Shown here: positions 4,312-59,006 of the stretch, piece by piece
Layout: each line of letters opens with the position of its first letter
Numbering within the stretch: position 1 is the stretch's first letter
Origin: Entomortierella parvispora E1425
Taxonomy: Eukaryota; Fungi; Mortierellomycota
NCBI GenBank assembly: GCA_020891255.1
Contig: BQFW01000013.1
Span: forward strand, 2,108,001 to 2,172,000
Direction of reading: 5' to 3'
Length of the DNA stretch: 64,000 nt
The notes under the pieces: generated by a model
The model's database searches: none
What the model saw: only the letters and a program-made list of their open reading frames with translations
Told to the model about the DNA's origin: nothing
Position numbers and translations under genes: made by a program

Positions 4312-7286
4312 ATGGCGACAGACACACTCACACTCTTCTGTCTCATCAGCGGCGAGTCCACGTCCAAATCCTTCAAAGTCAGAATTGTGGACAAAGATGC
4401 GGACGTCAGTGATCTCAAGGATGACGTCTTCAAGGTGATTTCAAATCCATCTGGACAAATCAAAGCTAAGGACCTGGTGCTATGGAAAGCCACGATCCCT
4501 GTCGGAGAGGAGCGCATAATCGAGCTTGGTAGTTTGGGCGACAAAATAAAGCTTGACAATCCAAGGACAGGCCTTTCCAAGCTGTTCCCTGAGAGTCCTG
4601 ACGACAACACATACATCGTTGTTGAGAAACCCGAAGGTATGCCCCTAGCTTTTCCGGATGGACGCGTGTGAGTTTAGCCGGTGGCCAGATTGCAGAGGAG
4701 CTCTCTAAGAAAGACTTTTCCCTTCTGGTCCTATGGTCCGTGCTCGCTGACTAATCACTGTTTTAAAAACTAGGTACAGCCACTGCTCAGCTAGAGATGC
4801 CTCGCCTTGCTCGAAGGCCGTCGAATGGTGAGTGTGGGCCCCTTTTCCTCTGATGAAATCGGTATTTGAATTGCGGTTCGCGTGCCTTTGTTCCAGCTGA
4901 GTTTATTTTAACTGGACAGACCAACATCGCTTGTCAACGTATTTCTGCTAGATCTCATGCACGTCATCAAGGAAATACAGGATAGTTTTCATCCACGAGG
5001 CCGAGGATCAGATTCAGCGCCTAAAGTATCAAGCCTGATGCCTATGCTGGAGCGTCCCTTGGATAAAGCCGCTAACAGAGTTATTAAGAATGTCATAAAC
5101 TGCTTGGATTCGCAGAAAGACGAGCAAGTTGCAAAGGCATTGAGTTCATTCCTTGTTTGCAGTGGCACAGCTGGGACTGGTATGGATGCTCATCTTTGTT
5201 ATATCATACGACAGCCTTTGATTACAATCATACTAATAACTCGCTTATGATAGGAAAAACGCGTTACGGTCAGGAGCTGAGCAGTTACTTGCGACGTCAT
5301 CTTTCGGAAAAAGTCAAAGAGAAGGGTCTCAGTTACACGCCTCTCCAGTACTACATGTTGCTCGATTTCTACAAAGATGCTAGTTTGCGCCAGGTTGAAT
5401 CCAAGCTCGATGCGGAAAACATTCTTGGTTTGCGCATGGCGTATTTTCATTTCTTCCAAGGCAAATACCTGGAGGCTTATCCAGATTTCTACCACCAAGT
5501 CGCAGACTGCCGCGGGCTTTTCACCATCACCAATGTCATCATCGCTATTCGCAAGGATTTGAAGCTTCCGGCAGAGAGACCATTCTTCCTCTTCCTTCAC
5601 ATCGATGAATTTCAAAAAATCTTTGATCACCGCTGGGAAGGAACTCCCGCACGCCGCCGTCCATCTCTGTCTAAGGGCGGAATTTATCTGGCTGGTGACA
5701 AAACTGAAGGTCACACAGAGGAAGGTCTCAGTCTGTTCAAGGATATAATGCACACCCTAGGGAACTTCATGAGCGGTGCCAGCAATCCTGATATAATCCA
5801 GACCTTTCTCTCGGGAACTGCTCGGAGGGAAGTAACTTTGGCAGCCAAACCGACGTTATATTCCTTTGAGTTTTTATCGTGTCCGCCGTTGTCCTTGGGA
5901 GCCTGCTATGACATTATGGGCAGTTTCCTGAGGCCTGAATCAGTCCATGCCTGTCAGTGGGTACCAAAGAAGGGGATTCTTTACCTTCTATCGGCCACAG
6001 GCGGTCTTCCACGTGCTCTGCAGCTTTTATTAGAAGAGTTTTTTGGAAGTCGGCTCGAGAACCACGCCAGTTTTCTAGAAGCACTCTCTAATATCGACGA
6101 GGATACGGATACCATTTTCGGCGAAGTCGAAATGCAGCTTGACAATTTGTACGCAATCACCGACTTCGCCAAAAAGCACAAAGGTCTTATTTGTGCAATT
6201 GTCCGGTTGTGCCTTCTTCAACAACCGGTCGAGCGTGATCATGTCCCATCCGATCTCTTCCCAAAATACACTATGGATGTTTTGGAGCGCGAAACACACA
6301 CGATTTTGGAAGACAACGAGGATAATGATGGAAGAATATTGGTCCGAATACCCTTTTTTTTCCTATCCCGCTACAACAAAGTCGTCGAAGAGGTTCGGAA
6401 TCATCTTAAAAAGATATTTGTGGAGGACTGGGAGTCTAGCCGAGGATGGAGCTTTTTCGAGGGCATTGTCGCTGATTTCGAGGCATTGCGGACGAACCTT
6501 CTTTTTGGCGACCGTCAAACAGCGACTCTTCGGGAAATCTACTGTGGGGCTATGGGACAGCCGGAAACCTTGGACCGCATTGTCAAACTCAAGGAACTAT
6601 CGGTTGTCAAGTTAATACACCGCTTCCCATCATCAGGAAGGCCAACAGTGGCCGGGGGGGAACAGCTGGACTGGAGATCTGATAAAGTGTTTGTAAATGC
6701 AGCTGGAGCATCATTCGCAGATGTATTCGTTTGTCGCGAGAGCTCGAACGGCAACGGCGAAAACATCCTCTTTGGACTGCAGGCGAAGAAGTTGACGACG
6801 GCTACTCTTACTCTGGAGACTATCAAGACTGAACACAAAAAAAACGAAGAGGCAATTAAAGGAGTGCCTGCGGGCTCGCTCTTGGATGAGGATAACATCA
6901 AAAACGCAAAAGTCATCACCGTCCTCATCACCACCGCGGACATAAATGACAAGAACTTCCAGCTGCTCAACAGTTCGTTTCCTCCCAACTGTCTCTTGAT
7001 ATACCAAGGGAACTTTACCAAGTTCTTCGGTCAAGCATTTAGCGTATCCGCTGCGCTCGCTCTTTCGGAGGATCTCAATTGGAATTTTGCAACCAAGGAT
7101 ACCCTTAAAAAAAAGCACCATCTCGACGACAGTGAGGTCGAAGATATTCTGGCCAATTTGCCTTATCGTTCATACGATGACCTTATTCAAAAGGTTCCTA
7201 CGATGAGCAGCAAGGCTACTGCCGCGGAGATGGGTTTCTTTCCATACCAATATTTTCGGGCGGAAAAAAGGCGTCGACTCTTTTAA
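4312..7286 (+). CDS. Crinkler (CRN) effector: ubiquitin-like header, P-loop NTPase, restriction-endonuclease-fold nuclease, HhH-like tail
   Basis: MATDTLTLFCLISGE...YIVVEKP header. Walker A SGTAGTG/KT is rebuilt across intron 5180-5253. Walker B LHIDEFQ, TGGLPRAL, FADVF...LQAKK. Four exons splice in frame. Confidence 0.88.
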
Positions 7287-7829
7287 ACGTTTTGGGCTTG
7301 TTCATAGTTTGAGTACAGAGCACTAAGAACGGTGGAGAAATAAATGATAGCTCTATTCTGACGCCTTTCACTGGTTTCGTCCACGGACCGCCTCGAGTAC
7401 AGGACTCGAGACTGAAGGACATCGTCTGGCGGACTGTGTGACCTATGAGGAAAATGCGCTCGGGGATCTCAGTGCGCGAGCCTAGGAGCAAAGCTGAAAA
7501 AAAAACAATCACAATCACGTCGTTAACGCATCTAATCTCATCTCCTCACCATCCAGCGGACACGAAAAGGTCTATGGTGGTCTCCGCCTGCTATTTCTTC
7601 GCTTCCTATTCCTGATACACTGAACCATGACCGTCATTAAGTCCTTCCCAACATGCCCTCCGCTTCTTTTGAAAAACTCTCACAAACCTCTAACGCGAGC
7701 GTGTCGAACCGCCATAGACAAGCCATAAAAGGGTGGAGCCGAAAGCTCTGGACCCACGCGTTCGATACGAAGGAATCTGCGTTTGAGGTGCTTGCAGTGC
7801 AACTGGAGGCTGTCTAACTAGAACGGAAC

Positions 7830-9599: not shown

Positions 9600-11575
9600 T
9601 CTTCCCTCATCGCTCTTGGCATCGATTCTCTGCCCTCTTTCCCTTTGATCCCTTCACCGCTCCCCTTCTCTTGATTACGTCTAAACTGCTGTTCATGGAA
9701 TCACCCCCACCCCTGCCACTGCCTGATTGTCTTCATGTCTGCGATGCACGAGCTCTAACTTTGGACATGTTCTGTACTCTGTCCGTACCTTCTCATTCTC
9801 ATGGCCCATGCTGGCCAAAGACCACAACAATTAATGTTCCTGAATATAGGAGAAATTATCAGATTTGCTCTGTCTCTTTTGTATTTCAGACCAAATCCAA
9901 TCATGAAGACTCGTTGCTTCTTTACTTTGTTATAAGAGTCGACTCTGCAATACTCAACTTTGCAAGATCGCCTCCGCCAATGACAATAAGACTGTGCGAG
10001 TGGGGGATGCTCAGACTGGCTCTCTTTGGCGCCTGGATTCATGGGCGAACTGGACCAACCTCGGGATTCAGCATGCATGTAATGGTTACAGGAGGAGGCA
10101 TTACCACAGACTTACTTGCAGTCGGGATCTTTCAAGAACATCACAAATTTCTTGCGGGACCATATCGTTTGTGGCGCTGTTTTCTTGGCAGTGGCGCCAA
10201 CAGATAGGAGCATGGCGAGGTAATACTCAGACTGAAAGTTTGGATTCTGTGTATCGTGGATCAAATCAGTCCCATCAATACCTGCTGGCCTGGATGGAGT
10301 TCGTACAACTGGCATTCAACTCGGGATCTGGAATGCGTCAGTTGCCACCCTCGGACAAGGATTGCTTTTATTCTTTGACGCAGGGATGATCAGAAAAGTC
10401 TGGTCCAAAGAGCACAAAAAAAAAATTGTTCGAACAATAGGACTCGGTCGTACATCCGCATATCAGGACGTGATACCACGAACCCATGGAGCAGAAGGAT
10501 GATATGTAAGGCATGCTGCTAATCTGCCTATTCGCAGCTACTCGATGCCAGCTGGGCCGAGGGGATTTTCAATTTATTTTTTCTAGCATCGTTGCGACCC
10601 GGGCGACAAACAGGGACTCAGATGTCGTCATACTCGAATGTAGGAAGTTTGATTCGTTTGGAAAAGTAAAAAACAAGGCGCGTCTGTATTCATACAGGCA
10701 TTTTTTTATGGCGACAATTACGAAGATGGCGGTGCAATCCTTGCAATGCTGCAGGTGCCCGCTGTCGAAGGGATTGCCGATGAGGATTGCCGATGCCCTT
10801 CTTCTCCTGCAAGTATGTTTGTCGCTCTGGGATCTTGACTAATTTACCGGGTCCTTTGGATTTTGCTACACGTGTCCAGAAAGTGCAGGGACGAGTCTCG
10901 ACCAGCTTGTGAAGTGATCATGAAGTGCTGCTTTGGGTTGCCTGATTACTGCCCACATCAATAAACAATCTACCACACTGCAAAAATATAAGAATAGCAG
11001 GCTCCTGGATATCGTTGCAAAAAATGTCCACGATCTAAACGGAACAAGCAATAATAAATTGGCAGAAAGTTGCCCCAGCACCATTCACCGCTTGATGAAG
11101 AGCGCGACAATCGTTTTCCAGCTTTCGCTTCGTGATTCGGTTGCAGAAATACTCATTCTCAAGGTCCTTATGAAGATTCTTGGCCCATGCTTTGTTTAGT
11201 CTTCTCGCCGTCTCCAGAATCTGAATGTTGCTCCGTTGCATATGTGCTATTGCATTTCTCCACTCCGCTCTTTCTTTGGCCTTGCCCAAGATCTCTTCTT
11301 TCGTCCACGTCAAAAAAGAGCTATACTGGAATTCCTCTGGTCGGGCGCATGAGCTCAGATATGGCCACGCGTAGAGACTTCTCAGACCTTGACGCCATGC
11401 TCGACGCGTCGACATGGTGGCATGTATCTAACCATTCAAACCACAAGATATCGACCGAAGTTAGACGTTCATAATATCACCCATTCACTTCAGATACATC
11501 TTGCGGAAAGACTCAATATCCGACAGTCTTGCTTGATAACTTCAAAATACCAGGTACCAATGACAGTCATGCTGA
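9600..11575 (-). pseudogene. degenerate gene of unknown family containing an RNAIAH (HEPN-like) segment at 11242-11259
   Basis: ORF 11035-11415 reads EWRNAIAHMQ. Downstream frames are broken by stops and frameshifts. Paralogous to 34000-36100. Confidence 0.55.
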
Positions 11576-39026: not shown

Positions 39027-42000
39027 TTATTCACTCTGCTTATCACTGGAAGGTAGCACTGCTTGTAAAACATCACCGGTCAACCCTTGTTCATCCTGGA
39101 CGGCTCTGACCGCAGAAAATATTTTCTCCTGCACATCGCTGCCAATGGTCTCTGACATCTCGCGTGTCTCTGTGTAGATCCGCAATGTGCTGTCTTGTAC
39201 TTGTAAAGATAAAGCGCGACGGCAGCTATACTGAAATAGACAACGCTCATACACACTCATTATTTCATCTTTCGAGAGCTGTGGAAGAGCGATGCATATG
39301 GAATGGGAATGTTGTCGGAGAACTTCTAAAGCGTACGCACTGGCATCTCCGCGTCTGTCCTTGAGTAGAGCAATGAGAAAATGTACTGCTAATTCTGGCA
39401 ACACAGACTGCTTGCCCAATGCTACTACTGCTGTATGTCCAACACGGTAATATTCATCCTTGAGCGCGTCAACAAGGGATTTAACGGCTGATTCTGGCAA
39501 CTCAGATTGACTGCCCAGTGCCCTTGCTGCCGCCGATCTGACATCCTTATCTCCATCCTTGAGTGCGTCAACGAGGGATATAATGGCGGATTCTGGCAAC
39601 TTGGATTGATTACCCAAGGCATTTGCTGCTGCATATCTGACATTATACCCTCCATCCTTGAGTAAGCCGGCGAGGAATCCGACAGCTGACTCTGGCAACT
39701 CAGACTGATTACTCAACACACTTGCTGCCGCAGATCTGACATATCTATTCCTATCCTTGAGTGCATCAATGAGAGACCCGATGGCTGATTCTGGCAACTC
39801 AGATTGATTCCGCAATGCCTCTGCTGCTGAAGTCCTGACATAATCGATAGACACAGCTACATGCTTGAGTGTGTCAACGAGGGACCGGACGGCTGATTCT
39901 GGCAACTCAGATTGTTTGCCCAATGCATCTGCTGCTTGAGATCTGACATCGCCATCTTCATCCTTGAGTGCGTCAACAAGTGATTCAACGGCCGATTCTG
40001 GCAACTCAGGTTGATTGCCTAATACCATTGCTGCCGCAAATCTAGCATACTCATCTCCATCCTTGACTGTGCGAACTAGGGATCTAATGGCCGATTCTGG
40101 CAACTCAAATTGTTTGCTCAATGCTATTTTTGCTGTAGAGCTGACGCTCTTGTCTTCATCCTTGAGTGCGTCAACGAGGGATCCTACCGCTAATTCTGGC
40201 AATGCTGATTTTTTTCCCAATGCTTTTGCTGCTGCAAATCTGACATCCTCATTTTCATCTTTGAGCGCATCAACGAGGGATATAATGGCTGATTCTGGTA
40301 ACTCAGATTGATTGCTCAGTGCTTCTGCTGCCGCAGATCTGGCATTCTTATCTCCATCTCTGAGTGCGTCAACGAAGGATCCGATGGCAGATTCTGGCAA
40401 CTCAGATCGATTGCCCAATGCTACTGCTGCCAGAAATCCAACACCGTTATCTCCATACTTGACTGCGTCAACGAGGGATATAATGGCTGATTCTGGCAAC
40501 TCAGATTGATTTCTCAATACATTTGCTGCTGCAGATCCGACATACTTATCTCCATTCTTGAGTGTGTCAACGAGGGACCGTACGGCTAATTCTGGCAACT
40601 CAGACTGATTGCCCAATGCATCTGCTGCTGAAATCCTGAGAGTCCAATCCTTCTCATTCAGTGCAGCAACGAGAGGCAGGATCGCTGATTTTGGCAACTC
40701 AGATTGATTGCCCAATGCATCTGCTGCTGAAATCCTGAGAGTCCAATCCTTCTCATTCAGTGCAGCAACGAGAGGCAGGATCACTGATTCTGGGAATGGA
40801 GACTGCTTTCCTAATGCTGTGGCTGCTGAACACCTTACTCTCGATTTGTCGTCCTTGAGTTCACTGACGAGGAAGTTGATAGCTTTGTCTGAAATTATAG
40901 AGCGAGCTCCCAGTGTTCTTGCAAGAGTGTTCCTCCACGAGTTTTGAGAGCGCAAGGTCTCAATCAGAGTAGCCTCCGGGAATGAGAGCCGACTGCCCAA
41001 CCTACTCACACAATAGTCGTCATGTTGAAGTGTGTGCATCTCAAAACGAAGCCATTTCTGTAGCTCCTCGTCTATTTCGTTGGCATATTTTGAGTCCAGT
41101 CGACCACGTGTCTCGTTGAAGCATGATGCCAGTATCAGCTGATGCCGTCCTCCTATCAGATCGCGCAGCGCACCCTGTAAAAGCCCAAAGAATTCCACCA
41201 GAGCTTCTCCTTCCAACAACCCCGCTACCATCGTCCAAACAATCTCATACTGAGGGTTGTATTTATGTTGGTGAACATAGTCGGCCAATTGATTCTTGGA
41301 CATCATCTCGGCTGGGAGACCTTTTTGTTTGAGGTGAAAGTGGCGGACTATCCAGGTTGCGGCGAAATATTCCTGAAATGTCAGATGCAAAAAATGCCAG
41401 GATCGCTCAGAATTGGCCTTTTTAGAACTTAGATCCGCATCTGCTGTGTGTAAAAATGATGTCTTCTTCAGGATCTCGACGAGTTCGAGAGGAGCAAGTG
41501 GCCGGTCGCCTGTCCCATATCCGTCGAGCTCACCACACGCACGCCGTATGTCCTTGTCTTGGAATTCAATTTGGTGATTGCTGTTCATTCCTTTGAACGC
41601 GAGATATCCAAGATACATCAACTCGGTGGCCATCAGATTGTCGATTTCATGAGGTTCGAAATCGTCAAGATACTCCTTATTCAGAAGAATTTCGCCAGTC
41701 TTCTTCTTGAGTCGAATGGCATCCTTGCAGCATAGTCTGCGCACCATCAGTTGATACAGTCCGGTCATTGTAATTTGTGAGTCGTTTTTTGGAAGTGTAT
41801 CCCAACTGAAGCAGATCACGTCCAGCTGCACAGGAATGTTGACAAGTCCCTGGATCAATGGTGTTCGTCGAATGAAGTTCTGAACTGATGTTGCTGCTCT
41901 AGAATCGAGCACCTTGACCACAAAGTCTTGGACATTTTGCCGACTGAATCCGACCGTCTCAAGTTCCAGATCAGTTGATTGTAATAGTGAGCTATCCACG

Positions 42001-44884
42001 CCGGAAGGTCTCGAAGTAACGACGACATATTGTTGTCCAAGAAGGGTCATCAAGAGCCTTCTAAAAGTCTGGCGCTCCTCGCTCTCCGTATCCGCCACAA
42101 TCTCATCCATACCGTCCAAGATGAAAAGAACCTTTCCCTTTTCAGCGCAGATCACAAGAGCTTCCGCCAACGCCTCCTGACGCTGGACACGATCCTGGCC
42201 GATAAAAATCTTGTCACGAAATAGACCTTCTAGGGTGTTGCCTGTAAATCCCCTGAGGCTGCGCAGTGGGATCCACAATACGACATCAAACAGATCCCTC
42301 CATAATCCATTCTGATGGGCATGGACAAGCTTCTTGCACAGTGTTGTTTTTCCGATGCCTGCTCTTCCTTGCACCAGAATCCTTCTAGGAACGTCCTCTC
42401 TTTCATTATTGCGTAGTGGCAGCTTGCGCTTGTTGAAAAGTTGTTCCAGCGGGATCACTGCATCCGTATTCGTATTTTCCACACACTCAAAACTCTGCAT
42501 CCGATGAAAGACTGTCGCTTGCTCTTTAAGATCCTGCTTTTCCTTTTGCCGATGTGCTGGTGCTTCGACGATTGCTAGGTTGACAAAGCATGTCTCCAGG
42601 TCCAGTGTATCTCCTGACACTCGGCGGATGACGAGTTCTGGCGCATGATAGGCATTGAGCGCCCTGTGGATGCCATAAAGACGAGGTTTCCAAGGGTACT
42701 GAGCCTGGACACTTTTCATCAGTGTGAACTTTGCATCAGTGTAGCCAGTTGAAACCGATGGCCGACAATTGTTCCAAAGTGGCGACTGTAGATCGACTTT
42801 TAGGTCTAATTCTGGGCTATGTTTTCGTATCTCCTCTAGCAAAGACGTGGCGCCTAGTATTGTCAAATATGAAGAAAAAAAATCAGGAATGGGTTCCTTG
42901 ATATTAAGCTTGTTCCCAGACGTTACAACTGGGATGCAGTAATGCGAGATCGACATAAATACCTTCAAAGTTAGCCCCATCATTAGTAGTCACATTGGTG
43001 AGGACGTCAAAGACGACCTGATCAACTCCTTCTTGCCGATTCCAAAGTTCAGAATCCTTGTAGAGATCTCCAAGGAATACAATCGCTTCCCTCCGAGCTA
43101 CTAGACCCCACTGAGTGTCAATCGCGAATCGTCCAAGAAGCTGGCAAATCCCCCATTGAAATTCGAACTGGTGTCGGTATGACGCGGTAGTGACCAGATT
43201 TTTGAATTCTACAAGCCACCCAGCGTTGATACACATCTCCGCTCTGCGAAGGGCGTCGTACCATGCTTTCTTGAACTTGAGACCCTCCTTCATAGAGAAT
43301 GTCGGATGATCATTGTTCCTAATGGCTGAGCGGAGGTCTTTGAGCAACCTGGCGCCTCCTTTGCCAGATTCGTATAGATTTTCCAGAGCCTCGAGTGAGT
43401 CCTTTATCGCTGTTGGATCCAAGATGTTGGCAAAGCCCGCTACAACCTTCAGCCCGGACCATACTCGTCTAAACCCTGCCTTCAGGACAGTCTCGTCATC
43501 CGGAATGTTCAACAGTGCCTGCGCAGCATACTCGGCTTGGAATGTCAAGTAGGGATCATCGCTTGACTCTAACTCTCGAAGAAGATCTTTCAATGGCCCA
43601 TGGAGGGCGTCGCGATCAAGACTTCCGATATCAGCATCTGCCATTGTATCCAGAACCTGTGAAACTGCAAGCAATAGGTGATGTCGATCTCGTGTGCTCT
43701 CTGGATGAGTCGACTGGAGTTTCTTGAAAAGGGATTGAAGGACGACTACAAGGTCGTTTGAGCTGATAGATCCTGGAGCTGCTCCTTGAATCACTTTGAC
43801 CAGTCCTCCCACTAGGTGTACATGAAAATGCCGTGACTGGCAGATAATATCGGTGAAAGATGTGAGGAGGAGCCGAGAATACTCGCTGTCGAGTACTGGA
43901 GCCAGCTGGACAACCTCCGCCACTGCAGCAGCATCCTTGGTGGTATTACTTCTGAATGTTTGGACAATCTGAACAGCTATGGTTTGCAGGCGGTCCTTCT
44001 CATCCAAGTTATTTCGAGTGCTGTGACACCACTGGACAGCTTCAGGGGAGAGATCCTCCTCATGGACTGAATCCTGTAGGAGCTGGAGACTGTAGACAAG
44101 TTGATGCGTACTCTGTAATTGCTCATCTGGACCGGGCAGTGAACACTGAACAGACACAGGATTTACATCCTTGGTGAAGAACGTCGTAGATTCGTGGATA
44201 CTGGTTGCCACTGCTATAGAGATGATTGTCTGAGTGGCTAGTGGAGGCGTCGATCGAGGGGTGGAGGAGATGTTGGTAGCCCAAGTGGCAGAACCTTTGA
44301 AGAAAAAACGAGCAAAGGCAACATTAATAAAGGTCAAGGTGGAGTTGCAGGTAGACAATAAAGACATACATACCTTCTAAAGAGACCATACTGGCAACTT
44401 TTGTCTCGACTTCTTCCTGTGAGATCATTGGTCCAGTCAAAGACGGCGAAGCGATGGACATACGAAACCTCCTGCTCTCGCCTAACTCTCGGCTAGTGTA
44501 GAGTGTCGTTCAGTTAGGGACTTTCAAAACCCCGATGTACATTGACGAGAAACAAAAAAAAAATGCTTACTTCAAGGCATCTGCTTTCTGTCTGCACTCG
44601 GCGGCCTTCCCTGTTTCTCCCGAATGATCCAGCACCTCGGCGAGTTCTCGAAGTGCATCCACCTTGCCAGTCAACGCATCAGCGCAAGCCTTCTTTTTGT
44701 CGATTTTTTTAAGAGCATGTACAGCTGCCCAGTAGTATGTCAGGACCTTGAGTTTAGACCCCTCAGCTTCTCGAGCAGATTGGGCACGATCCTTTGCCTT
44801 CTCCAAAGCCTCGTGTTCAGAAGGCGTCATGTTCACCGTGCTATATACAAAGCACATATCAGTCTCTGTCTTGTGAGCATTCAT
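39027..44884 (-). CDS. NLR-like protein: helical N-terminal/ARM-like region, NACHT, about 16 HEAT (PBS-lyase-like) repeats
   Basis: GRAGIGKT, FILDGMDE, VVTSRP and WHFLHLTFQEYFAA. 33-aa repeats LGNQSELPESA..SLVDALKD....VR.AAA. Predicted exons join in frame, and the last exon starts at 42853. Start codon approximate. Confidence 0.9.
39400..40900 (-). repeat. 99-bp HEAT-repeat array with high internal DNA identity
   Basis: 15 ELPES-type linkers. 40606-40683 and 40705-40782 are identical at 99-bp offset. Confidence 0.92.
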
Positions 44885-47487: not shown

Positions 47488-47749
47488 CATTTCACAATAT
47501 ATTTTTGATGTTTTGTACGATCACTCATATGATCCATCGCCACTTGTTGATTCGGGGTCTTTCCAGCCGAGCACATCTCAGGATCAAGGACTGGACTCTG
47601 CGCACTATTTACTCCAAACAGCGGACAATGTAGAGTCGCGTCAGCCGGTGCATGGTTTGGATCCACCAGACCGATCGGCTGGTCAGAGACAGGTCCATCT
47701 CTCGTGCAATTCCAGGTCCAAAAGGTTTCGAGCGTGGCGACAGAACAGG

Positions 47750-47984
47750 GGGATTCCGAGACGTGGAACAGTCATTAAGAGGCCGCTGAAAAGGTCGGTG
47801 AAGTTGTAGATGGGTCGAGGGGTTCTCTTGAGCACAGGATGGTGAGGGGTCAAGGGTCAAGGGTCAGAGGTCAGAGGTCAGAGGTCAAAGGTCACGGGAT
47901 GGAGGGTCCTTTGCTACCATGCAATAGGAGTACTGAGGACAGAATGAAGTGCCGTTTATTATAGTACTAGAGACTGAGTTACTA
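47750..47984 (-). mobile_element. truncated Ty3/gypsy 5' end: R-U5, PBS (47908-47919), TGACC-repeat leader, first gag-like codons
   Basis: TACTCCTATTGCATGGTAGCAAAGG is identical to 1434-1458. TATAATAAA..CACTTC also matches. Seven 7-bp TGACC units at 47847-47895. Confidence 0.8.
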
Positions 47985-48548
47985 TCACGTTTGACATGAC
48001 ATTCCGTGGCCAATCGCACAGCAATCACCGAAGAAGTTATCGTCTAAGCAACAAGTTGGAGAGGTGGTATCGACCTTTCCAGATTTTCCGGTTCTTTTCT
48101 TGATTTGCGCTCTTGTTTTTTTCATATCATCGTCCTCGATGTAAGCCATACCTGCGTTATATGCTGAGGGATAACCGGTATCATCTGCCCACACTTGACT
48201 AGGATCAGTCGGACCGCTTCCGCACGGTAATTTATTCCCCGAGTAGATTGCCTGTGCTGTCAAGACACTTGGCTCTCTGAAACAGTAGGCAAAAGCACAA
48301 GCAGAAGTCGCTCCAAATAGGCAAACATTGCCTGGCATGGCAACTCCATAGTCCATCTCGCAATAACTTTGTGCATTAAGCGCACATTTCAAAATAGCGA
48401 TAGAACCGCAATCTCCGACGAGCTCATGCGGCTTATGACCACCAGGCGTAGTGGCGTTGTGGCCAGACATCAGAGTGGTGTTGTGGCTAGATGCCTCTGT
48501 CAGCGAGAGAACTGCGAAAATTGACAGTATCTTGATCTTGAACAACAT
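47985..48548 (-). CDS. secreted Cys-rich preprotoxin-like protein A (187 aa, 12 Cys)
   Basis: Signal peptide MLFKIKILSIFAVLSLTEA, two N-glycosylation sequons, hydrophobic Cys-spaced domain, KKR site, then CC..CC..C tail. Intronless. Confidence 0.8.
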   Translation of the reverse strand: MLFKIKILSIFAVLSLTEASSHNTTLMSGHNATTPGGHKPHELVGDCGSIAILKCALNAQSYCEMDYGVAMPGNVCLFGATSACAFAYCFREPSVLTAQAIYSGNKLPCGSGPTDPSQVWADDTGYPSAYNAGMAYIEDDDMKKTRAQIKKRTGKSGKVDTTSPTCCLDDNFFGDCCAIGHGMSCQT

Positions 48549-49665
48549 GAAAGCGATACCTAAAGAAGAGAAGCGGGGATTAGATTGATACCGAAGAAAC
48601 AGCTGCATGCAGAAATAGGCAAAAACTGAATACTTATTTACTTTGGGAAGGGATTTGGAGAAGATGTGGAATTTATTAGCAATGGGCCCATGACTATTTA
48701 TATTAATTCTGGAGTTAACTTGTACTTGTTGGTGAGTTTCGTTACCACGCCACGAGAAGTAACTGTGATGGAGAACCCATTCTGTCCTGGAGACACTTCC
48801 CAGGGCATGGTGCAGGACCAGGACGTGGTACAAAACCAGAAGAACAACGGACAATAAAGGAGCATTGGGGGCAAATGGACGCTTCCGCCAAGGAAGGGGG
48901 CAAGTGGACACTTCCACCAAGGAAGTGTGCCAAGGATGATTCTATTTCTTGGCGCTGCAGCTCCTCGCCCGCTGCCCTGCGCCCGAATCATTGTCGCTCT
49001 GTAACCCATTTTGAATGAGCAACGTTCCGAGGGAATAGATTGCGGTATTCTAAACATCACGCAGCCAAGGATGACATGTTTATTTGTCGTCTGTGTTCTT
49101 CAGTCTACTCGACTTAACGATAGGCAACGACTAGTTGGCGGGCCCCCGGGAGACAAACAGACACGAGCTACCAACGCAGATAGATGGGAAACTAGAGAAT
49201 CGGATAACGGCAGAGCGGGATTTGTCTGTTTCTTGACAGTACGCGATTTTCAAGCAGGCACAAAAAATATAACACAGATAATAGGAGAAAACAGCTCAAA
49301 AATGATGGTTGTTTTGGATCACATTCCAGTGAATTTCTCACGCTCAGGGAGAGAGCGGTATCGCTACTGGGAACCTTTTCAGTGGGCGATTCGCTAATCT
49401 CGATATCAAGTAATTGGAAGGCAGCAGAACAGACGCGTCTATTTGTCCGCCGTTTCGACGGAGAAAACAAACAAACAAGAGCCAACCGCATGGATGGATG
49501 GATGGATGGAAAACAAGAGCATCGGATAACTGCCAAGAACGATCAAGTCGCACAACTTCTGAAGTGCTTTGCTGGACGCGTCTAATTGTCTGTTGACCCA
49601 ACATTTCCCTATTTGTCGTTCAAGGGTAAATTTCAAAATAAAGTTCAGAGGCACATGGACACTTC
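48419..49665. repeat. left arm of about 1.2-kb inverted repeat
   Basis: Reverse complement of 50090-51307 with few substitutions and one extra 29-bp tandem unit near 48903-48931. Confidence 0.95.
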
Positions 49666-49897
49666 TGGAAGCCTCAATTCGCAAAGGCGCACAAAACGAT
49701 CAAGCTCAGGAAGTTCAACACGAGAAATGCAATTGCGTCGGTGGATATGTAAAAAGATATGAACCAACGGCTTTATGGAACTTCTGAGACAGAGATGAAG
49801 GACGTCCCTAGGAGTGACCTTATGATCACAGTCGATAATCGATCGCATCCTGGTCATACAGATACTTACGAAACCGAAGTATGTTGCAGTGGGTAAC

Positions 49898-49947
49898 CAG
49901 GGCGCGGTGCATGGTCAGGGCGCGGTGCATGGTCAGGGCGCGGTGCA
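49898..49947 (+). repeat. 18-bp GC-rich tandem repeat x2.8 (CAGGGCGCGGTGCATGGT) in the palindrome spacer
   Basis: Direct reading. Confidence 0.9.
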
Positions 49948-50089
49948 GAAATCAAACGACAAATAAGAGACGACAATAAGAGCATCAGATGACAAGGAAG
50001 GAACTGTGGGGTCGGACGACAATAGACACCTCCGGTTTGCTCTTGTTTGTTTGTCTTCGTCGGAAGGGCAGAAAAATAGACGCATTCGT

Positions 50090-51307
50090 GAAGTGTCCAT
50101 GTGCCTCTGAACTTTATTTTGAAATTTACCCTTGAACGACAAATAGGGAAATGTTGGGTCAACAGACAATTAGACGCGTCCAGCAAAGCACTTCAGAAGT
50201 TGTGCGACTTGATCGTTCTTGGCAGTTATCCGATGCTCTTGTTTTCCATCCATCCATCCATCCATGCGGTTGGCTCTTGTTTGTTTGTTTTCTCCGTCGA
50301 AACGGCGGACAAATAGACGCGTCTGTTCTGCTGCCTTCCAATTACTTGATATCGAGATTAGCGAATCGCCCACTGAAAAGGTTCCCAGTAGCGATACCGC
50401 TCTCTCCCTGAGCGTGAGAAATTCACTGGAATGTGATCCAAAACAACCATCATTTTTGAGCTGTTTTCTCCTATTATCTGTGTTATATTTTTTGTGCCTG
50501 CTTGAAAATCGCGTACTGTCAAGAAACAGACAAATCCCGCTCTGCCGTTATCCGATTCTCTAGTTTCCCATCTATCTGTGTTGGTAGCTCGTGTCTGTTT
50601 GTCTCCCGGGGGCCCGCCAACTAGTCGTTGCCTATCGTTAAGTCGAGTAGACTGAAGAACACAGACGACAAATAAACATGTCATCCTTGGCTGCGTGATG
50701 TTTAGAATACCGCAATCTATTCCCTCGGAACGTTGCTCATTCAAAATGGGTTACAGAGCGACAATGATTCGGGCGCAGGGCAGCGGGCGAGGAGCTGCAG
50801 CGCCAAGAAATAGAATCATCCTTTGCCCCCTTCCTTGGCGGAAGCGTCCATTTGCCCCCAATGCTCCTTTATTGTCCGTTGTTCTTCTGGTTTTGTACCA
50901 CGTCCTGGTCCTGCACCATGCCCTGGGAAGTGTCTCCAGGACAGAATGGGTTCTCCATCACAGTTACTTGTCAGGGCGTGGTAACGAAACTCACCAACAA
51001 GTACAAGTTAACTCCAGAATTAATATAAATAGTCATGGGCCCATTGCTAATAAATTCCACATCTTCTCCAAATCCCTTCCCAAAGTAAATAAGTATTCAG
51101 TTTTTGCCTATTTCTGCATGCAGCTGTTTCTTCGGTATCAATCTAATCCCCGCTTCTCTTCTTTAGGTATCGCTTTCATGTTGTTCAAGATCAAGATACT
51201 GTCTATTTTCGCAGTTCTCTCGCTGACAGAGGCATCTAGTCACAATACCACTCTGATGTCCGGCCACAACGCCACTACGCCTGTTGGTCATAAGCCCCAT
51301 GAGCTCG
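50090..51307. repeat. right arm of about 1.2-kb inverted repeat
   Basis: See left arm. The ORF track shows mirrored identical peptides on both arms. Confidence 0.95.
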
Positions 51308-51768
51308 CGAGAGAATGCAAGGCCTCCAACCTTATAGCTTGTTCGACGGCTGTAGCAACATTCTGTACTGGTGCGGTCGGTGTTGAATATACTCCTATTT
51401 GTTGTGCAGGGGCGATTGCCTTTTGTGGAACATTACTGTGCGCCGCCAAGCCAGCTGTCACGACTGCTGTTGCGCTTTATAATGGTTGGAGACTATCATG
51501 TGATACTGGTCCCACTGATCCTGAGGCAGTCTACGGGGCGAACACTCCAGAGGCCAATGCATACAATTACGGTTACGCTTACGCTGAAGAACATAATCCT
51601 TGGGCTGACTATGCAAGACCGGTCAGAATCAAAGAAACACGAAGACTCCGAACGAAGACCCAAGGAAGAACATTAGGAGAGGTTGACACCACAACAAATT
51701 GTTGCCTAGCCCAGACTTACTTTGGTACATGCTGTGATATGGCCCACGGATTGGCGTGTCAAATGTAA
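51178..51768 (+). CDS. secreted Cys-rich preprotoxin-like protein B (196 aa, 13 Cys)
   Basis: First 43 aa near-identical to protein A, then divergent with conserved Cys spacing, GPTDP, AYN.G.AY and VDTT..CC..CC...HG..CQ. Confidence 0.8.
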   Translation: MLFKIKILSIFAVLSLTEASSHNTTLMSGHNATTPVGHKPHELARECKASNLIACSTAVATFCTGAVGVEYTPICCAGAIAFCGTLLCAAKPAVTTAVALYNGWRLSCDTGPTDPEAVYGANTPEANAYNYGYAYAEEHNPWADYARPVRIKETRRLRTKTQGRTLGEVDTTTNCCLAQTYFGTCCDMAHGLACQM

Positions 51769-51992
51769 ACAGATAGATAGTTCAACTCTCCGCCGATTTT
51801 GAGTGGGATCTTCGAGTCTATGAGATATTTTGTAACATCCACAGCCGTAGCTCTTCCTACTTTTTATTCTGCGACAGAGATGGAGGAGGACTGTAGTCAC
51901 TATCACTATTCTCATATTAAAGAGGCCGGCCATCTCTGCCGATTAAACCTCCTTCTTCGTGTCCTTGGCGCTTCAGGCACCAAACATTTCAT

Positions 51993-52236
51993 CTCCCGTA
52001 TATCCAGTCTATAGAGGACAGGAAAACAATGCGGCGATCCTTTGCTCTCCCTGAAGGGTACGAAATATCAAGAAAATTCAAATATGCACTGGGATGGAAG
52101 CATTCCAAGGAGCATCGCCATAAACCGAAGTCTAAGGATCTCCGCATGTACAAGGTCAAGCGAGATAAGAAAGCGAAAATAGGCATGTGCAGTAGGAAAG
52201 CGATAGTGGTCATTTCTGAAGGCAAGAAGTACAGAC
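51993..52236 (+). pseudogene. internal fragment of the T5orf172-family gene (Cys/His domain)
   Basis: FPYIQS...RRSFALPEGYEISRKFKYALG matches 24200-24460. Confidence 0.8.
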
Positions 52237-54655: not shown

Positions 54656-56513
54656 ATGCCCACCACCGGTAATCTACCCTTGCATCCCATGTTAGGTATT
54701 AAGCTTGCCGAACAAATTTATTAAACACCTCTCCACCTTTTCTTGCGCAGACGAAAAAGTCCCTGACGACGGACAAGTTCCTTCGCCTCCTACAGCCCCC
54801 AGCGCCAGCAACACGGGGACAGTCCATAATCCGAGTATTGAAGATCCGCACGAGGTTCCCGATGCAGACGACAATAGTGCGACCCTTGAGAACGAGTGTA
54901 GCCAAACGACCGGCGGTGAGGCTGAAGAGGGTTCCAAGATTGAAAAGGTGGTTGCTGCCCTGGACTTGACACACCGGGTGGAGAATGAAAAGGCTACAGA
55001 GGCTGCGGACCCCAAAGCAGAGTCCAGATCTGACCGTCCAGGATTATCATTGGGCCAACCTGACTCTGGTTTTTTTGGATCAACATCCAGCAGTGAAGAT
55101 GCTTCTCAAGCTGAAATTCACAGGTTGACCGAGCAGTTGTGCGAGTTGCAATTGAAGAAGGACCATGAGGTTGAAAGTTTAAAAAAGAAACTACAAGAAA
55201 AAGACCGGGAGATTGAGAGTATCAATAAGGACCTCGAAGCTGCCAAGGGTAAGTTTGTTCCTTGCAATGGTTGGCAACACCGATCCACCTTGGACTAATA
55301 ATCGCCTTTCCTCTTTGACGTTTTCAACGGAATATCCAGGCCAGTTTCCTGATCTATCCCCACGGCCTGACTTCTGTTTCGCCTTCTTGGACGAGACTTT
55401 TGAACCCTGCCCCAACAGACCTGAGCCAGATGCCATGATGTGCGCTGACCATCGCAAATTTCCACTTCTCGTTTCCACACCTGACAACCCTCCCACAAAC
55501 AAGGGACCACTTTTCAAGATCCCCAGTGGCGCGGCCCCTCAGGAATTCCCCTACGCCCTGGGCGTTGACCTTGTGGGATCGGATCCGACCAAGGAGGATA
55601 AAGAAAAGAAATTGAAATGCTACTACCCAAAATGTGGGGCTGTAGCGTACAAGATCTATTATGACGAAGACGAAGACAAGGAGGACGTGCGCACCCCGCT
55701 TTGCAGATACCACAACAAAGCGGGCGTCAAACCAATCTCAAGCTTCTCTCAAGAGCTTTATGGGAACAAGATCTATGGCCGTTTCTTCCCAGGTAAAAAA
55801 AAATTTGTAATTTGTGGATTTTGCGTTGGACACATGGGATCTCTCCTTACTCAAATCTGAGCCCTTCCATTATTCTGTCTTCATATCGTTCAGAGAAGGG
55901 TATTTATGATAGTCTCCCCGCCGGACGACTCCTCCAACAACGTTTCAGTCATTCAAATCCTGTAACCGCTGCAGATCATGTCGGCTACCTGTACATATTC
56001 CAAGTCCTCGAAAAACGACTCCAACAAGACCGTCAGAATTCCGAAAACCAAAATCGTAACTTGTTCAAGATTGGCAAAACTGCTCCCGGACTCGAGCGCA
56101 GAAAAAAACAGCACGAATGCAAATGCGAAAAAATCAGTGATTTTGTCCCTTTCACCAGAGGAGCCGAGGAGACAACTGTCCTTGAACAAAGTAATGGTGA
56201 GCTCTACCGTTATGTAGGTCTCTTTGAGCGCCTTCTCCACGGAATATACGTTCTCGCCAATGATTACAATTGCATATGTAATGTACGCCATGGTGAGTGG
56301 TTCAAACAGGGCGACTTTAATAATCCCAAATGGTCCCTTAAAGAAGCAATTGACATTGGTGTCCCCTTGCTCGAGCGGTTGAAAAAATTCTATCCTCTGC
56401 CAGAACACTTGAAGAAGGGTCCCAGAAATTCGGTTCTTGCTCCGAAAGATCGTATCTTGGCCTTTAACGCCATGCAAGATTTTTACAAAAGTCAAGAGTT
56501 GACACCAGAATAA
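54656..56513 (+). CDS. coiled-coil + Cys/His domain + T5orf172 protein (third full paralog)
   Basis: Same four-exon layout as 19672. GYLYIF, FKIGKT..RRKKQHECKC, ERLLHG and CICNVRHGEWF. Confidence 0.85.
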
Positions 56514-56771: not shown

Positions 56772-59006
56772 TCACTTGCCGCCCAGCTTGAATCCACCTC
56801 CAAAGGGAGAAGCCGTCGCAGCTGGTGCACCAAAGAGACTCGAGCCACCGGCTGCAGAGCCAGCTGGAGGAGCCGTGAGCGAAAAGGTGGGTGCAGAAGT
56901 CGGGGCCGCTGAAGCTGCTTGTCCAAATCCTCCAAATGCTCCTGTTGTCGCTGCAGGCGCAGCCGCAGAGGTCGCAGGGGTGGTTCCAAAGCCTCCAAAT
57001 CCGCCCGTGCTGGCTGCAGGCTGTCCAAAGAGAGAGGATCCAGCCGTTGAAGTCACAGGCGCAGTCGATCCAAAGAGACCGCCCGTGGCAGGCGCAGCGG
57101 TGGTTGTGGTTGTAGATCCAAAGAGTCCTGAGGTAGCAGGGGCAGCCGAGGTGGTGGAGGCTCCACCAAACAAACTACCGCCAAAGGCAGGTTTGGCCGC
57201 TGTGGAGGCCGCTTGGGCTGTTGTGGAAGCACTTGCACCTGCTGCTGATCCTGGTCGAAGTGTCTCCTTGGCGATATCTCTAAAGGACTTTTGACTGCTG
57301 CCACTGTTGATACTCTGACCCAAATGACCACTCTCCAACATCACAGATCGTTGGCTTTCTGAACCCCGGAGACCATTCTCGGCTCTCCTGTGCTTTTGCT
57401 GCTGCTGGTGCTGATGGTGTGCCTCGAAAGGATCCGATTCGTCATCAAAGAATTTCCGACGGAACATCAAGTATGCCTTTTCCCGGTCCCTGATCTCATC
57501 ATGAAGTACCGCCACACGACTGGCAACTGACAAGAATCCCTCGTGCTGATTCCTCAAAACTTCGGGCAATGCTAGTAAAATGAAAAACAGACCCACGAAC
57601 TTGTAAATAAAAAGATTCCTTGTGCTAGAGCAACGCACACATCAGCTCCAGTATGATATACGGTCGTTACCATGTGCCACCTGGGGGTTCCTAGACCCAA
57701 ATGAGGCCAAATGACGTTCAATTTCCTAATAGAGAGACAGACGCAGGTCATAACGCTCCATAGATTAGCGCTCCTTCCCGCTGCATTGTTGTGCGCGTTT
57801 CTAAAATCCCTGTTATCATCCAGTCCTTACCTCGATAGTGCTCCGGAACTGTCTAATCTGATCCTCAAATGCCTGGCACTGATCCAGAAAGTATCTGCGA
57901 TGATGGTCAATGAAGCACTGTTAGCCGCCTGAAAAATCAAGTCAAGAGAATGACGATAACCCGAATTCAAAGATCCTTACTGTCCTGCCGAGTTGTTTCC
58001 AGCATATAAAAAGTTGGCCTGTGATGTGTTGCTGTAGGCCTCGATAATTCTTCCTGCAGAATCTGCCTGCTTCAGCTCTTGTCCGACCTTGCTCTGCAGC
58101 GCCTCGATCACCTTTGTATCCCGACCCAAAGCGTCGTTCAATGTGCTCAGTCTCTTGGACAGCTCCACTGTGTCTTTTGAAATCTTGTCCAATGAATCTG
58201 ATGGTCTGGAAGTCAATGTCGCGGAGAGGTGGATCTGGCTTTGCAGGAACTGATGGAATTGGTCCAGAGTCGACTTTGCATCTGCGGGGAGCTCTGTGTA
58301 TTTTGTCGATCCAGCAATTGTATCGGGGGTAAGGGCACTATCATTTGAATTGAGAACATTTTTCATACTATTTAGAAGCCGCTTTGGTCCATCATCTCGA
58401 CCATTGGCCAGCTAAAAGACATACACTGCTGCGGCTGTAGCTGTTGAGGCGCCAAAGGTGCTCTTTGTGGCTGCATTGGTCAGGGCATTTGCGGCTGCGG
58501 TCGAGTTTGGATTGCTGAAGAGTGATCCCGTGGAGAGAGTCGAAGTGGGGGCGGTTGATGTTGCAGTGGCAGGCTGAGCAGAAAACAAGCTACCGCCAAA
58601 AGATGGCGCAGAGGTGGCTGCCGGAGCCGCGCTCGAGGTTGTAGCAGTTAAAGAGGGGAAAAGCGATGAGGATGTGGTGGCAGCAGCAGAGGCAGCAGGC
58701 GCAGCACCGAAAAGTGAACCTGTCGAAGTCGCTGGTGCAGATGTCGCAGGGGTTGATCCAAAGCTGCCAAAGGGATTCGCAGGTGCGGATGCAGCAGGCG
58801 CAGGAGTGGCGCCAAAAGGATTAGCGGGGGCAGAGGTTGCAGCAGGAGCAGCGCCGAATCTAGAGGGAGACAGGGGATGGGGGGATCATGGCATGTTAGT
58901 GGAGAGTGAGAAGGAAAGGGGGATGATCTACATGGCATTGTTGTTATGCAGTCGAGATGCAAAGCAAATGACAAAAAAGAAGGACTTGCCCCTGGAAGAG
59001 AGACAT
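56772..59006 (-). CDS. NUP58: FG nucleoporin Nup58/Nup49, apparently intact
   Basis: MSLFQG/FGAAPAA FG region, coiled coil, QYFLDQCQAFEDQIRQFRSTIE/EIERHL, LRNQHEGFLSVASRVAVLHDEI..AYLMFRRKFFDDESDPF and a C-terminal FG tail. Exons join in frame, and the first intron is GC-AG. Confidence 0.85.

Follow-up and report, generated by a model that had tools for sequence, protein, structure and literature searches.

[quoted passage not shown] The first, A1 (47985..48548 including the stop codon, minus strand), encodes a putative secreted protein of 187 aa with 12 cysteines, which we designated type A. The second, B1 (51178..51768, plus strand), encodes a putative secreted Cys-rich protein of 196 aa, designated type B, which carries the 12 cysteines of the family and one extra. 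The leader coding segment of A1 (48420..48548, minus strand) specifies the signal peptide MLFKIKILSIFAVLSLTEA, the sequons NTT and NAT, and an end in HKPHEL. That of B1 (51178..51306, plus strand) specifies the same 43 residues except for the substitution G36V. The complete proteins were 49% identical and their mature regions 38% identical, and the motifs GPTDP, AYN.G.AY, and VDTT..CC..CC..HG..CQ, which had been predicted to be kept, were found in both. Genes for NLR proteins and mobile elements lie in the neighbourhood of this locus, which is on contig C13 and is hereafter called the C13 locus.

The two genes enter a palindrome from opposite sides. Repeat finding and our own alignment gave identical coordinates for its arms: the left arm (48419..49665, 1247 bp) contains A1 codons 1-43 and approximately 1.12 kb of upstream DNA, and the right arm (50090..51307, 1218 bp) contains approximately 1.09 kb of upstream DNA and B1 codons 1-43, so that 129-130 bases of each arm are coding. 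A single-copy spacer of 424 bp (49666..50089), delimited by the alignment, forms the centre. The arms differed at 10 of 1218 aligned bases and by one 29-bp insertion in the left arm. Overlapping repeat pairs and the alignment gap identified this insertion as a tandem duplication (48903..48931) present in the left arm only. Six of the 10 mismatches fell within the A1 leader coding segment, all of them singletons. Identity between A1 and B1 ended within approximately 3 bases after CATGAGCTC. The original prediction had described near-perfect inverted arms around a 424-bp spacer, each with about 1.1 kb of upstream DNA and the first 43 codons, an abrupt end of identity, and two divergent genes with a common promoter and leader but different mature parts; the alignment bore out all of these features, the arms at exactly the coordinates given above. 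An inverted repeat of 1.2 kb with 99% identity cannot have arisen by chance.

The assembly was built from 409x Nanopore and Illumina data (PMC8759367), and fold-back chimeras can occur in Nanopore-based assemblies. In contigs of an Illumina run, however, the collapsed arm had a depth of 148, as against 61-81 for the unique gene flanks and 65-74 for the spacer. Both arm variants and both unique junctions were also seen in these contigs, which report copy number and both junctions rather than orientation. The arm, at about twice the depth of the flanks and with both variants seen, is thus present twice in the reads. Furthermore, the arms differ at 10 sites and by the 29-bp indel, each of them enters a different unique gene, and a diverged paralogous locus on contig C5, described below, has the same architecture. 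A fold-back artefact of the assembly is therefore very unlikely indeed.

A putative secreted protein family with twelve conserved cysteines

A profile search of 1.84 billion representatives and 5.8 billion proteins matched three proteins only: P0001, P0002, and P0003. P0001 (EMPS_03897) is encoded at the C5 locus and is referred to below as B2; its partner at that locus is A2. We compared A1, A2, B1, B2, P0002, and P0003. From the sequences and the models, the family appears to be arranged as a signal peptide, a short N-glycosylated His-rich stretch, a helical, disulfide-rich hydrophobic domain with seven cysteines, a basic linker in which a dibasic site lies, and a C-terminal domain with five cysteines in the order CC-x8-CC-x7-C. 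The sequence thus contains the elements of the originally predicted layout: a signal, a glycosylated stretch, here with two N-glycosylation sequons, a hydrophobic domain rich in Cys, a dibasic site, and a small Cys domain at the C-terminus. All 12 cysteines (seven plus five) and the dibasic site before the C-terminal domain were conserved in six of six sequences, the site reading KR in A1, A2, P0002, and P0003 and RR in B1 and B2. The spacing C-x7-C-x7-C-x10-12-C-x7-C-x4-C-x19-23-C-x55-66-CC-x8-10-CC-x7-C was kept in all but P0002, in which the N-terminal spacings were shifted. The N-terminus is signal-like, and signal cleavage and dibasic processing are predicted from the sequence. Because the number of cysteines in each domain is odd, cleavage at the dibasic site would be expected to leave two disulfide-linked chains.

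AlphaFold2, run with the alignment of the six sequences, predicted an all-helical core at residues 47-143 with a pLDDT of 75-93, and a C-terminal domain with a pLDDT below 50. AlphaFold2 was also run on mature A1; the helical pattern recurred, at lower confidence. With the B1 model as the query, Foldseek found no match in PDB or in the viral BFVD at E of 0.001 or less. The best Z (5.3) in the wide VIA search of PDB belonged to unrelated helical proteins, and the Atlas fold search was without match. The weak matches to the B1 fold were generic helical ones, with TM-scores below 0.4; C3a anaphylatoxin, for example, gave a Z of 4.8, which is below helical-bundle noise. Sequence searches gave a similar result. 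No Pfam family was matched at E up to 10 by A1 and B1 or at E up to 0.01 by P0001-P0003, the PDB sequence search returned nothing (best E = 1.5), and ESM Atlas feature queries gave no usable match. Metagenome scans with the leader and with the B-type mature domain revealed no relatives, and no contigs encoding P0001 were on record. These results describe an orphan family of secreted 12-Cys proteins, which would be a new one and, as far as the databases show, appears to be restricted to Entomortierella.

P0001, the sole annotated protein among the four genes of the two loci, is named a hydrophobin in UniRef. Like fungal hydrophobins, the family members are small, secreted, and Cys-rich and have hydrophobic stretches. 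However, a regular-expression search for the 8-Cys hydrophobin envelope C-CC-C-C-CC-C was negative in seven of seven sequences, the Pfam match is absent, and the predicted core is helical, in contrast to the beta-barrel of hydrophobins. We rejected this assignment, and the label "Hydrophobin" is probably wrong.

Recurrent arm-to-arm gene conversion at two loci

The genome contains exactly four members of the family, all intronless, at two loci, and each locus is a divergent pair of one A and one B gene. The mature region of A1 was 71% identical to that of A2, and B1 was 76% identical to B2. At the C5 locus, the inverted arms are 1.9 kb long and 98.2% identical, take in codons 1-41, and stop at the same codon as the C13 arms, at CATGAGCT. 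Parts of the C13 spacer are homologous to sequence inside these longer arms. Arm DNA was confined to the two loci, with no dispersed copies elsewhere, and a transposon origin of the arms was rejected on that ground.

In the four-way alignment, the upstream DNA and the leader had 33 locus-specific sites and 0 type-specific sites, whereas the mature region had 4 locus-specific and 116 type-specific sites. The switch from one pattern to the other occurred within 3 bases of CATGAGCT at both loci. Within loci, nucleotide identity was 95-99% in the leader and 52-55% in the mature region. For the mature region, A compared with B gave a dS of 1.2-1.4, and the two loci compared with each other gave 0.24-0.28. 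The arms thus group by locus and not by orthology, as expected of concerted evolution. These site patterns, by locus upstream and in the leader and by type in the mature region, show that recurrent arm-to-arm conversion homogenises the promoter and leader within each locus, as the original prediction had proposed, and that A and B are paralogs that split in ancient times (dS above 1.2). The unit consisting of A, the two promoters, and B was duplicated to C5 after this split, and no conversion extends past the nucleotide that follows CATGAGCT, the point at which the DNA of A and B ceases to align.

The near-identity of promoter and leader could in principle reflect strong purifying selection, or one recent duplication, with no recurrent conversion. 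Indeed, dN/dS of the leader between loci was 0.15-0.24, which is lower than that of the mature domain. However, the 33 shared-derived differences are locus-specific, with none type-specific, and include a 6-bp indel in the signal peptide; this pattern requires copying between the arms once the loci had separated. Homogenisation within loci extended to synonymous and non-coding sites. A single duplication before the split predicts equal divergence within and between loci, but the arms diverged by 0.8-1.8% within a locus and by 17-25% between loci, and duplications that took place independently would have to share a breakpoint. We therefore consider an origin of the identity without recurrent conversion very improbable.

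It had also been proposed that the expression and secretion module is kept identical as a constant. This part of the prediction did not hold: the leader was 43% identical to that of E. lignicola, and the mature domain 43-48%. Since leader and mature domain have diverged to the same extent between species, the within-locus identity of the leader reflects conversion and not selection for a constant module.

Taken together, a real palindrome in the nuclear genome and an orphan secreted family, shaped by an ancient A/B split, duplication of the pair to C5, and recurrent conversion within each locus, is the reading to which we assign a probability of roughly 0.8. The sharp boundary may be self-maintaining, because conversion requires homology, whereas differences between the mature regions have reached saturation; selection against erasing the difference between A and B may reinforce it.

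The human Y chromosome carries ampliconic palindromes that are maintained by arm-to-arm gene conversion. The Entomortierella loci resemble them in having arms with 98-99% identity around a short unique spacer, and in evolving concertedly within a locus while the loci diverge. They differ in that the arm ends in coding sequence at codon 43, so that only the promoter and leader are homogenised; the mature parts are 38% identical, and the boundary is sharp to the codon at two paralogous loci. A constant signal and pro region combined with a divergent mature peptide on a Cys framework is found in conotoxin superfamilies and in the precursors of frog skin antimicrobial peptides. Those are large families with separate exons under strong diversifying selection, in contrast to the four intronless members found here, and we found no homology to them.

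Clustered paralogs of the SSSGP-1 salivary effector genes of the Hessian fly have highly conserved promoters, UTRs, and signal-peptide coding sequence but a highly diverged mature region; the authors proposed concerted homogenisation through short conversion tracts, which divergence of the mature region limits (PMC2955719). The present loci differ in having one palindromic pair each, two payload types, and omega below 1, and conversion was shown here by a site-pattern test across two loci. Families of the SSSGP and conotoxin type are marked by a near-identical leader and flanks before a diverged mature region, which we found, and by many payloads behind one leader with omega above 1, which we did not find.

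Gene conversion at these loci is thus limited, unusually cleanly, to the regulatory and leader portions of the paired genes; its boundary is sharp to within 3 bases and has held at two paralogous loci since their separation (dS of about 0.25). Comparison of the two loci provides an internal control by which conversion can be told apart from purifying selection, something seldom achievable. The loci also show how a palindrome can tie a pair of different secreted proteins to a single promoter and secretion leader.

Possible roles of the protein pair

According to the original prediction, the locus is a cassette resembling a killer preprotoxin, or a toxin with its immunity gene, in which selection preserves the constant module while the mature peptides become diverse or are exchanged at a fixed junction. 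The killer toxins K1, K28, and KP6 are encoded by dsRNA viruses and processed by Kex2, with an excised gamma segment, and K1 and K28 consist of disulfide-linked alpha and beta chains. The family described here shares with them the order of signal, glycosylated segment, hydrophobic domain, dibasic site, and second Cys chain, and a two-chain product is plausible, in that the seven-plus-five distribution of cysteines would link the chains after cleavage as in the alpha/beta pairs of K1 and K28. The raised omega of the mature domains (pairwise values of 0.55 and 0.76, from two sequences per type), the restriction of the family to one lineage, and the NLR and mobile-element genes nearby are also in line with a toxin.

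Other observations speak against this proposal. The family genes are chromosomal, their glycosylated segment is N-terminal and not an excised gamma segment, and their leader/mature junction in Entomortierella lacks KR. Membership in, or homology to, killer preprotoxins was not supported by the searches of Pfam, PDB sequences, Foldseek PDB/BFVD, VIA, and Atlas, in which no toxin resembled the family in sequence or fold. Swapping or diversification of payloads at a fixed junction was likewise unsupported. The genome contains four copies of the leader and four payloads, types A and B twice each; both types are ancient, and no further payload preceded by this leader occurs in the genome. The mature regions group cleanly by orthology, as the excess of type-specific over locus-specific sites shows, the leader is not conserved across species, and omega remains below 1. 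We consequently regard the toxin cassette as quite unlikely, and the more specific proposal that A and B are components of a new Mucoromycota secreted toxin system (a heteromeric or two-chain membrane-active killer protein, or a toxin and its partner), with promoter and leader kept identical by palindromic conversion so that the two would always be produced and exported jointly, and with the boundary selected because it keeps the payloads distinct, as distinctly improbable. Our leading guess, held with low confidence, is a role in extracellular interaction, either as antimicrobial or membrane-active proteins or as surface-active or cell-wall proteins. If they should prove to be antimicrobial, they would represent, speculatively, a new family of toxins from a fungal lineage with few known.

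With practically the same promoter and secretion leader, A and B are probably co-expressed and co-secreted. A scan for promoters and terminators gave fewer sites than shuffled sequences, and its models are of the bacterial type and irrelevant to a fungus. A further proposal is that A and B are subunits of one extracellular heteromer, the palindrome having been selected for 1:1 co-expression through identical promoters. Such a heteromer is compatible with recurrent conversion between the arms of a duplicated pair, to which it adds a functional claim. Each locus has one A and one B, the pair itself was the duplicated unit, and the promoters are near-identical. However, the E. lignicola contig, which ends 1 kb upstream of the gene, has a single B-type gene with no A gene within 1 kb upstream or 3.8 kb downstream, and we regard the heteromer as unlikely. 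Prediction of a complex of mature A1 and B1 gave a score of 0.01, which counts neither for nor against it. In the tree, B1 and the E. lignicola protein formed a group of moderate support.

Structure and reality of the palindrome

The inverted arms were delimited at 48419-49665 and 50090-51307 by our own local alignment, which joined two adjoining pairs from the repeat search. The arms showed 10 mismatches over 1218 aligned bases and were separated by a central spacer of 424 bp; the sole indel between them was a 29-bp insertion in the left arm alone (48903-48931), which is a tandem duplication. Two long ORFs leave the arms, both containing the signal-peptide-like start MLFKIKILSIFAVLSLTEA, and the gene starts were set at the ATG of this sequence, giving A1 (47985-48548, minus strand, 187 aa) and B1 (51178-51768, plus strand, 196 aa). 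Each arm contains 43 codons, referred to as the leader, and approximately 1.1 kb of upstream DNA. Residues 1-43 of A1 and B1 were identical except for G36V, and the identity was 49% over the whole protein and 38% past the junction. The repeat search, the alignment, and the ORFs reproduced every detail of the palindrome described in the original prediction.

The E. parvispora genome was obtained by 409x Nanopore assembly with Illumina polishing (PMC8759367). The window corresponds to C13:2108001-2172000 in an assembly comprising 38.9 Mb in 20 contigs. Read depth was checked by placing contigs of a 2021 run, presumably filed as DNA, on 47700-52000. The collapsed arm formed one contig with a depth of 148, and the depth was 61-81 in the unique flanks and 65-74 in the spacer. 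Both arm variants were present among these short-read contigs, some of which run from each unique gene into its own arm. The depths match an arm present in two copies; the sample is not independent of the assembly's own, and the contigs give no orientation. A fold-back artefact of assembly is nevertheless considered highly improbable, because the arms differ from one another and lead to different genes, and because a diverged second locus shows the same design.

A paralogous locus and arm-to-arm gene conversion

A six-frame genome search revealed exactly four family members: A1, B1, and a paralogous pair on contig C5, B2 (C5:1357863-1358441, minus strand) and A2 (C5:1371465-1372013, plus strand). 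Searching the genome with the leader only, or with a mature-domain profile (the mature domain being the protein past the junction), gave the same four places and nothing more. The B2 protein was identical to GenBank GJJ71547.1 (EMPS_03897, Entomortierella parvispora). A2 and B2 likewise form a divergent pair, with inverted arms of 1.9 kb and 98.2% identity that take in codons 1-41 of each gene. Further incomplete copies of the upstream segment lie in the 13-kb interior, together with a Ty3/gypsy-type retroelement, whose inserted ORFs account for most of the interior's length: a Ty3/gypsy chromovirus-type pol ORF with RVT_1, RNase H, integrase, and chromodomain (local coordinates L007:737-3631, minus strand) and a gag-like zinc-knuckle ORF (L007:4533-5576, minus strand). 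The repeats within C5:1357863-1372013 (L006 and L007) include a third, incomplete copy of this upstream segment, an internal inverted repeat (local 6185-7651 versus 10615-9123, 95%), and a duplication of the B2 3' flank (local 3102-3613 versus 10685-11194, 82%).

In the genome search, arm DNA was found only at the C5 locus and at that of the window (C13); a transposon or dispersed repeat was therefore rejected as the identity of the arm. Homology between C13 and C5 was confined to the gene pair, the intergenic DNA, and approximately 220 bp past the stop of B, and the comparison of the two loci revealed no further conserved gene beside the pair, for instance a candidate for immunity.

The leader starts were locus-specific, being MLFKIKILSIFAV in both C13 genes and MLFKILAIVTV in both C5 genes. 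In a four-way nucleotide alignment of A1, B1, A2, and B2, all informative differences in the upstream DNA and leader were common to both genes of one locus, and at most 3 bases past CATGAGCT this pattern flipped to differences common to the same gene type. The 250 bp upstream plus leader contained 33 locus-specific and 0 type-specific sites, and the mature region contained 4 and 116, respectively. A change that the two arms of a locus have in common, and that the other locus lacks, can only result from arm-to-arm copying later than the separation of the loci. Arm divergence was 0.8% (C13) and 1.8% (C5) within a locus and 17-25% between loci. The mature-region dS (Nei-Gojobori, two sequences per type) was saturated between A and B, at 1.2-1.4, and was 0.24-0.28 between loci. 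These results show that recurrent intra-locus gene conversion homogenises the promoter plus leader. The site patterns across both loci thus bear out the homogenisation of the arms proposed originally, and the type-specific pattern of the mature region does not support the proposed swapping of payloads.

The C13 arms were 95.3% identical in the leader and 99.6% in the upstream kilobase, and the six leader mismatches were all singletons. Homogenisation is less recent in the leader than in the upstream kilobase, in keeping with a position close to where the conversion zone ends. The E. lignicola ortholog was 43% identical to B1 in the leader and 43% in the mature domain. Because the leader is no better conserved across species than the mature domain, the within-locus identity of the leader reflects homogenisation rather than purifying selection.

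The conversion boundary was the same at C13 and C5; it is therefore older than the split of the loci and has not moved since. Past the boundary, A and B were approximately 52% identical at the nucleotide level. Because conversion needs homology and A and B are this diverged there, the boundary would sustain itself, and it may have been established by selection against loss of the difference between A and B.

Predicted features of the A/B proteins

The family proteins had no Pfam match. Profile searches of 1.84 billion representative proteins and of 5.8 billion proteins found only P0001 (B2), P0002 (E. lignicola KAF8954602), and P0003 (a JGI metagenome relative), and metagenome scans gave no further relatives, making the family an orphan. 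KAF8954602.1 is annotated as partial; an in-frame ATG lies 51 bp upstream with the signal-peptide-like start MLFAKIIAISVIPLLTQG, and the complete ORF encodes 200 aa (L008:1027-1629, contig JAAAUG010001738.1). The gene is preceded by 1 kb of this contig, and the short-read assembly could have been interrupted at that end by a repeat.

Twelve Cys residues were kept in all six sequences; the hydrophobic N-terminal domain contains seven of them and the C-terminal domain (CC-x8-10-CC-x7-C) the other five. The full spacing, C-x7-C-x7-C-x10-12-C-x7-C-x4-C-x19-23-C-x55-66-CC-x8-10-CC-x7-C, was found in five of them, the exception being P0002 with shifted N-terminal spacings. B1 has a 13th Cys at residue 76 (ICC versus LCG in B2) and hence an odd total, unlike the other five members. 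With an odd number of the family Cys in either domain (seven and five), complete oxidation would call for at least one disulfide between the domains. Ahead of the C-terminal domain, the basic linker carries a KR or RR dibasic site, and P0003 has an additional KR immediately preceding its first Cys.

From the alignment of the six sequences, AlphaFold2 predicted a confident all-helical core of five helices at residues 47-143 of B1 (pLDDT 75-93), with no confidence elsewhere; the A1 model was weaker and likewise helical. Fold searches against 48,161 PDB representatives with VIA (best Z 5.3) and against the ESM Atlas (TM below 0.4) gave nothing above noise, and Foldseek found nothing in PDB or viral BFVD at E <= 0.001. 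In the mature-domain tree, A1 grouped with A2 (81/77), and B1 and B2 grouped with E. lignicola (80/84); with this moderate support, the A/B split is probably older than the divergence of the two species. Omega between loci was 0.55 (A) and 0.76 (B), which is raised yet below 1.

Relation to known systems and neighbouring genes

P0001 is labelled 'Hydrophobin' in UniRef (UniRef100_A0A9P3H7N4). This label was rejected: the hydrophobin 8-Cys spacing and a Pfam hydrophobin match were absent, as was the expected beta fold in the predicted structure, and the name seems to be a misannotation. The likeness to killer preprotoxins, the identity originally suggested, was confined to the order of elements and found no support, as all homology tests run were negative.

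The A1/B1 structure belongs to a known kind, the palindrome with conversion between its arms. In the Hessian fly SSSGP genes, a conserved promoter and signal peptide with a diverged mature region were attributed to short conversion tracts (PMC2955719). The A/B locus differs in combining three features: the arm of the palindrome stops in-frame within coding sequence, the payloads number only two and are ancient, and conversion is proven by a paralogous locus. The pair represents a known evolutionary mechanism in a well-controlled variant that acts on a new orphan family of predicted secreted proteins.

The flanks of the pair contain a NACHT-HEAT NLR ORF (39027-42983, minus strand, 1318 aa) directly followed by an ARM-like ORF with an ARM_5 domain (42904-44367, minus strand, 487 aa) and, downstream of B1, a T5orf172-domain ORF (55812-56513, plus strand) and an FG-nucleoporin-like repeat ORF (56772-57638, minus strand). 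The flanking NLR, ARM-like, and T5orf172 genes are unrelated to the pair; the first two (39027-44367, minus strand) lie approximately 3.6 kb from A1.
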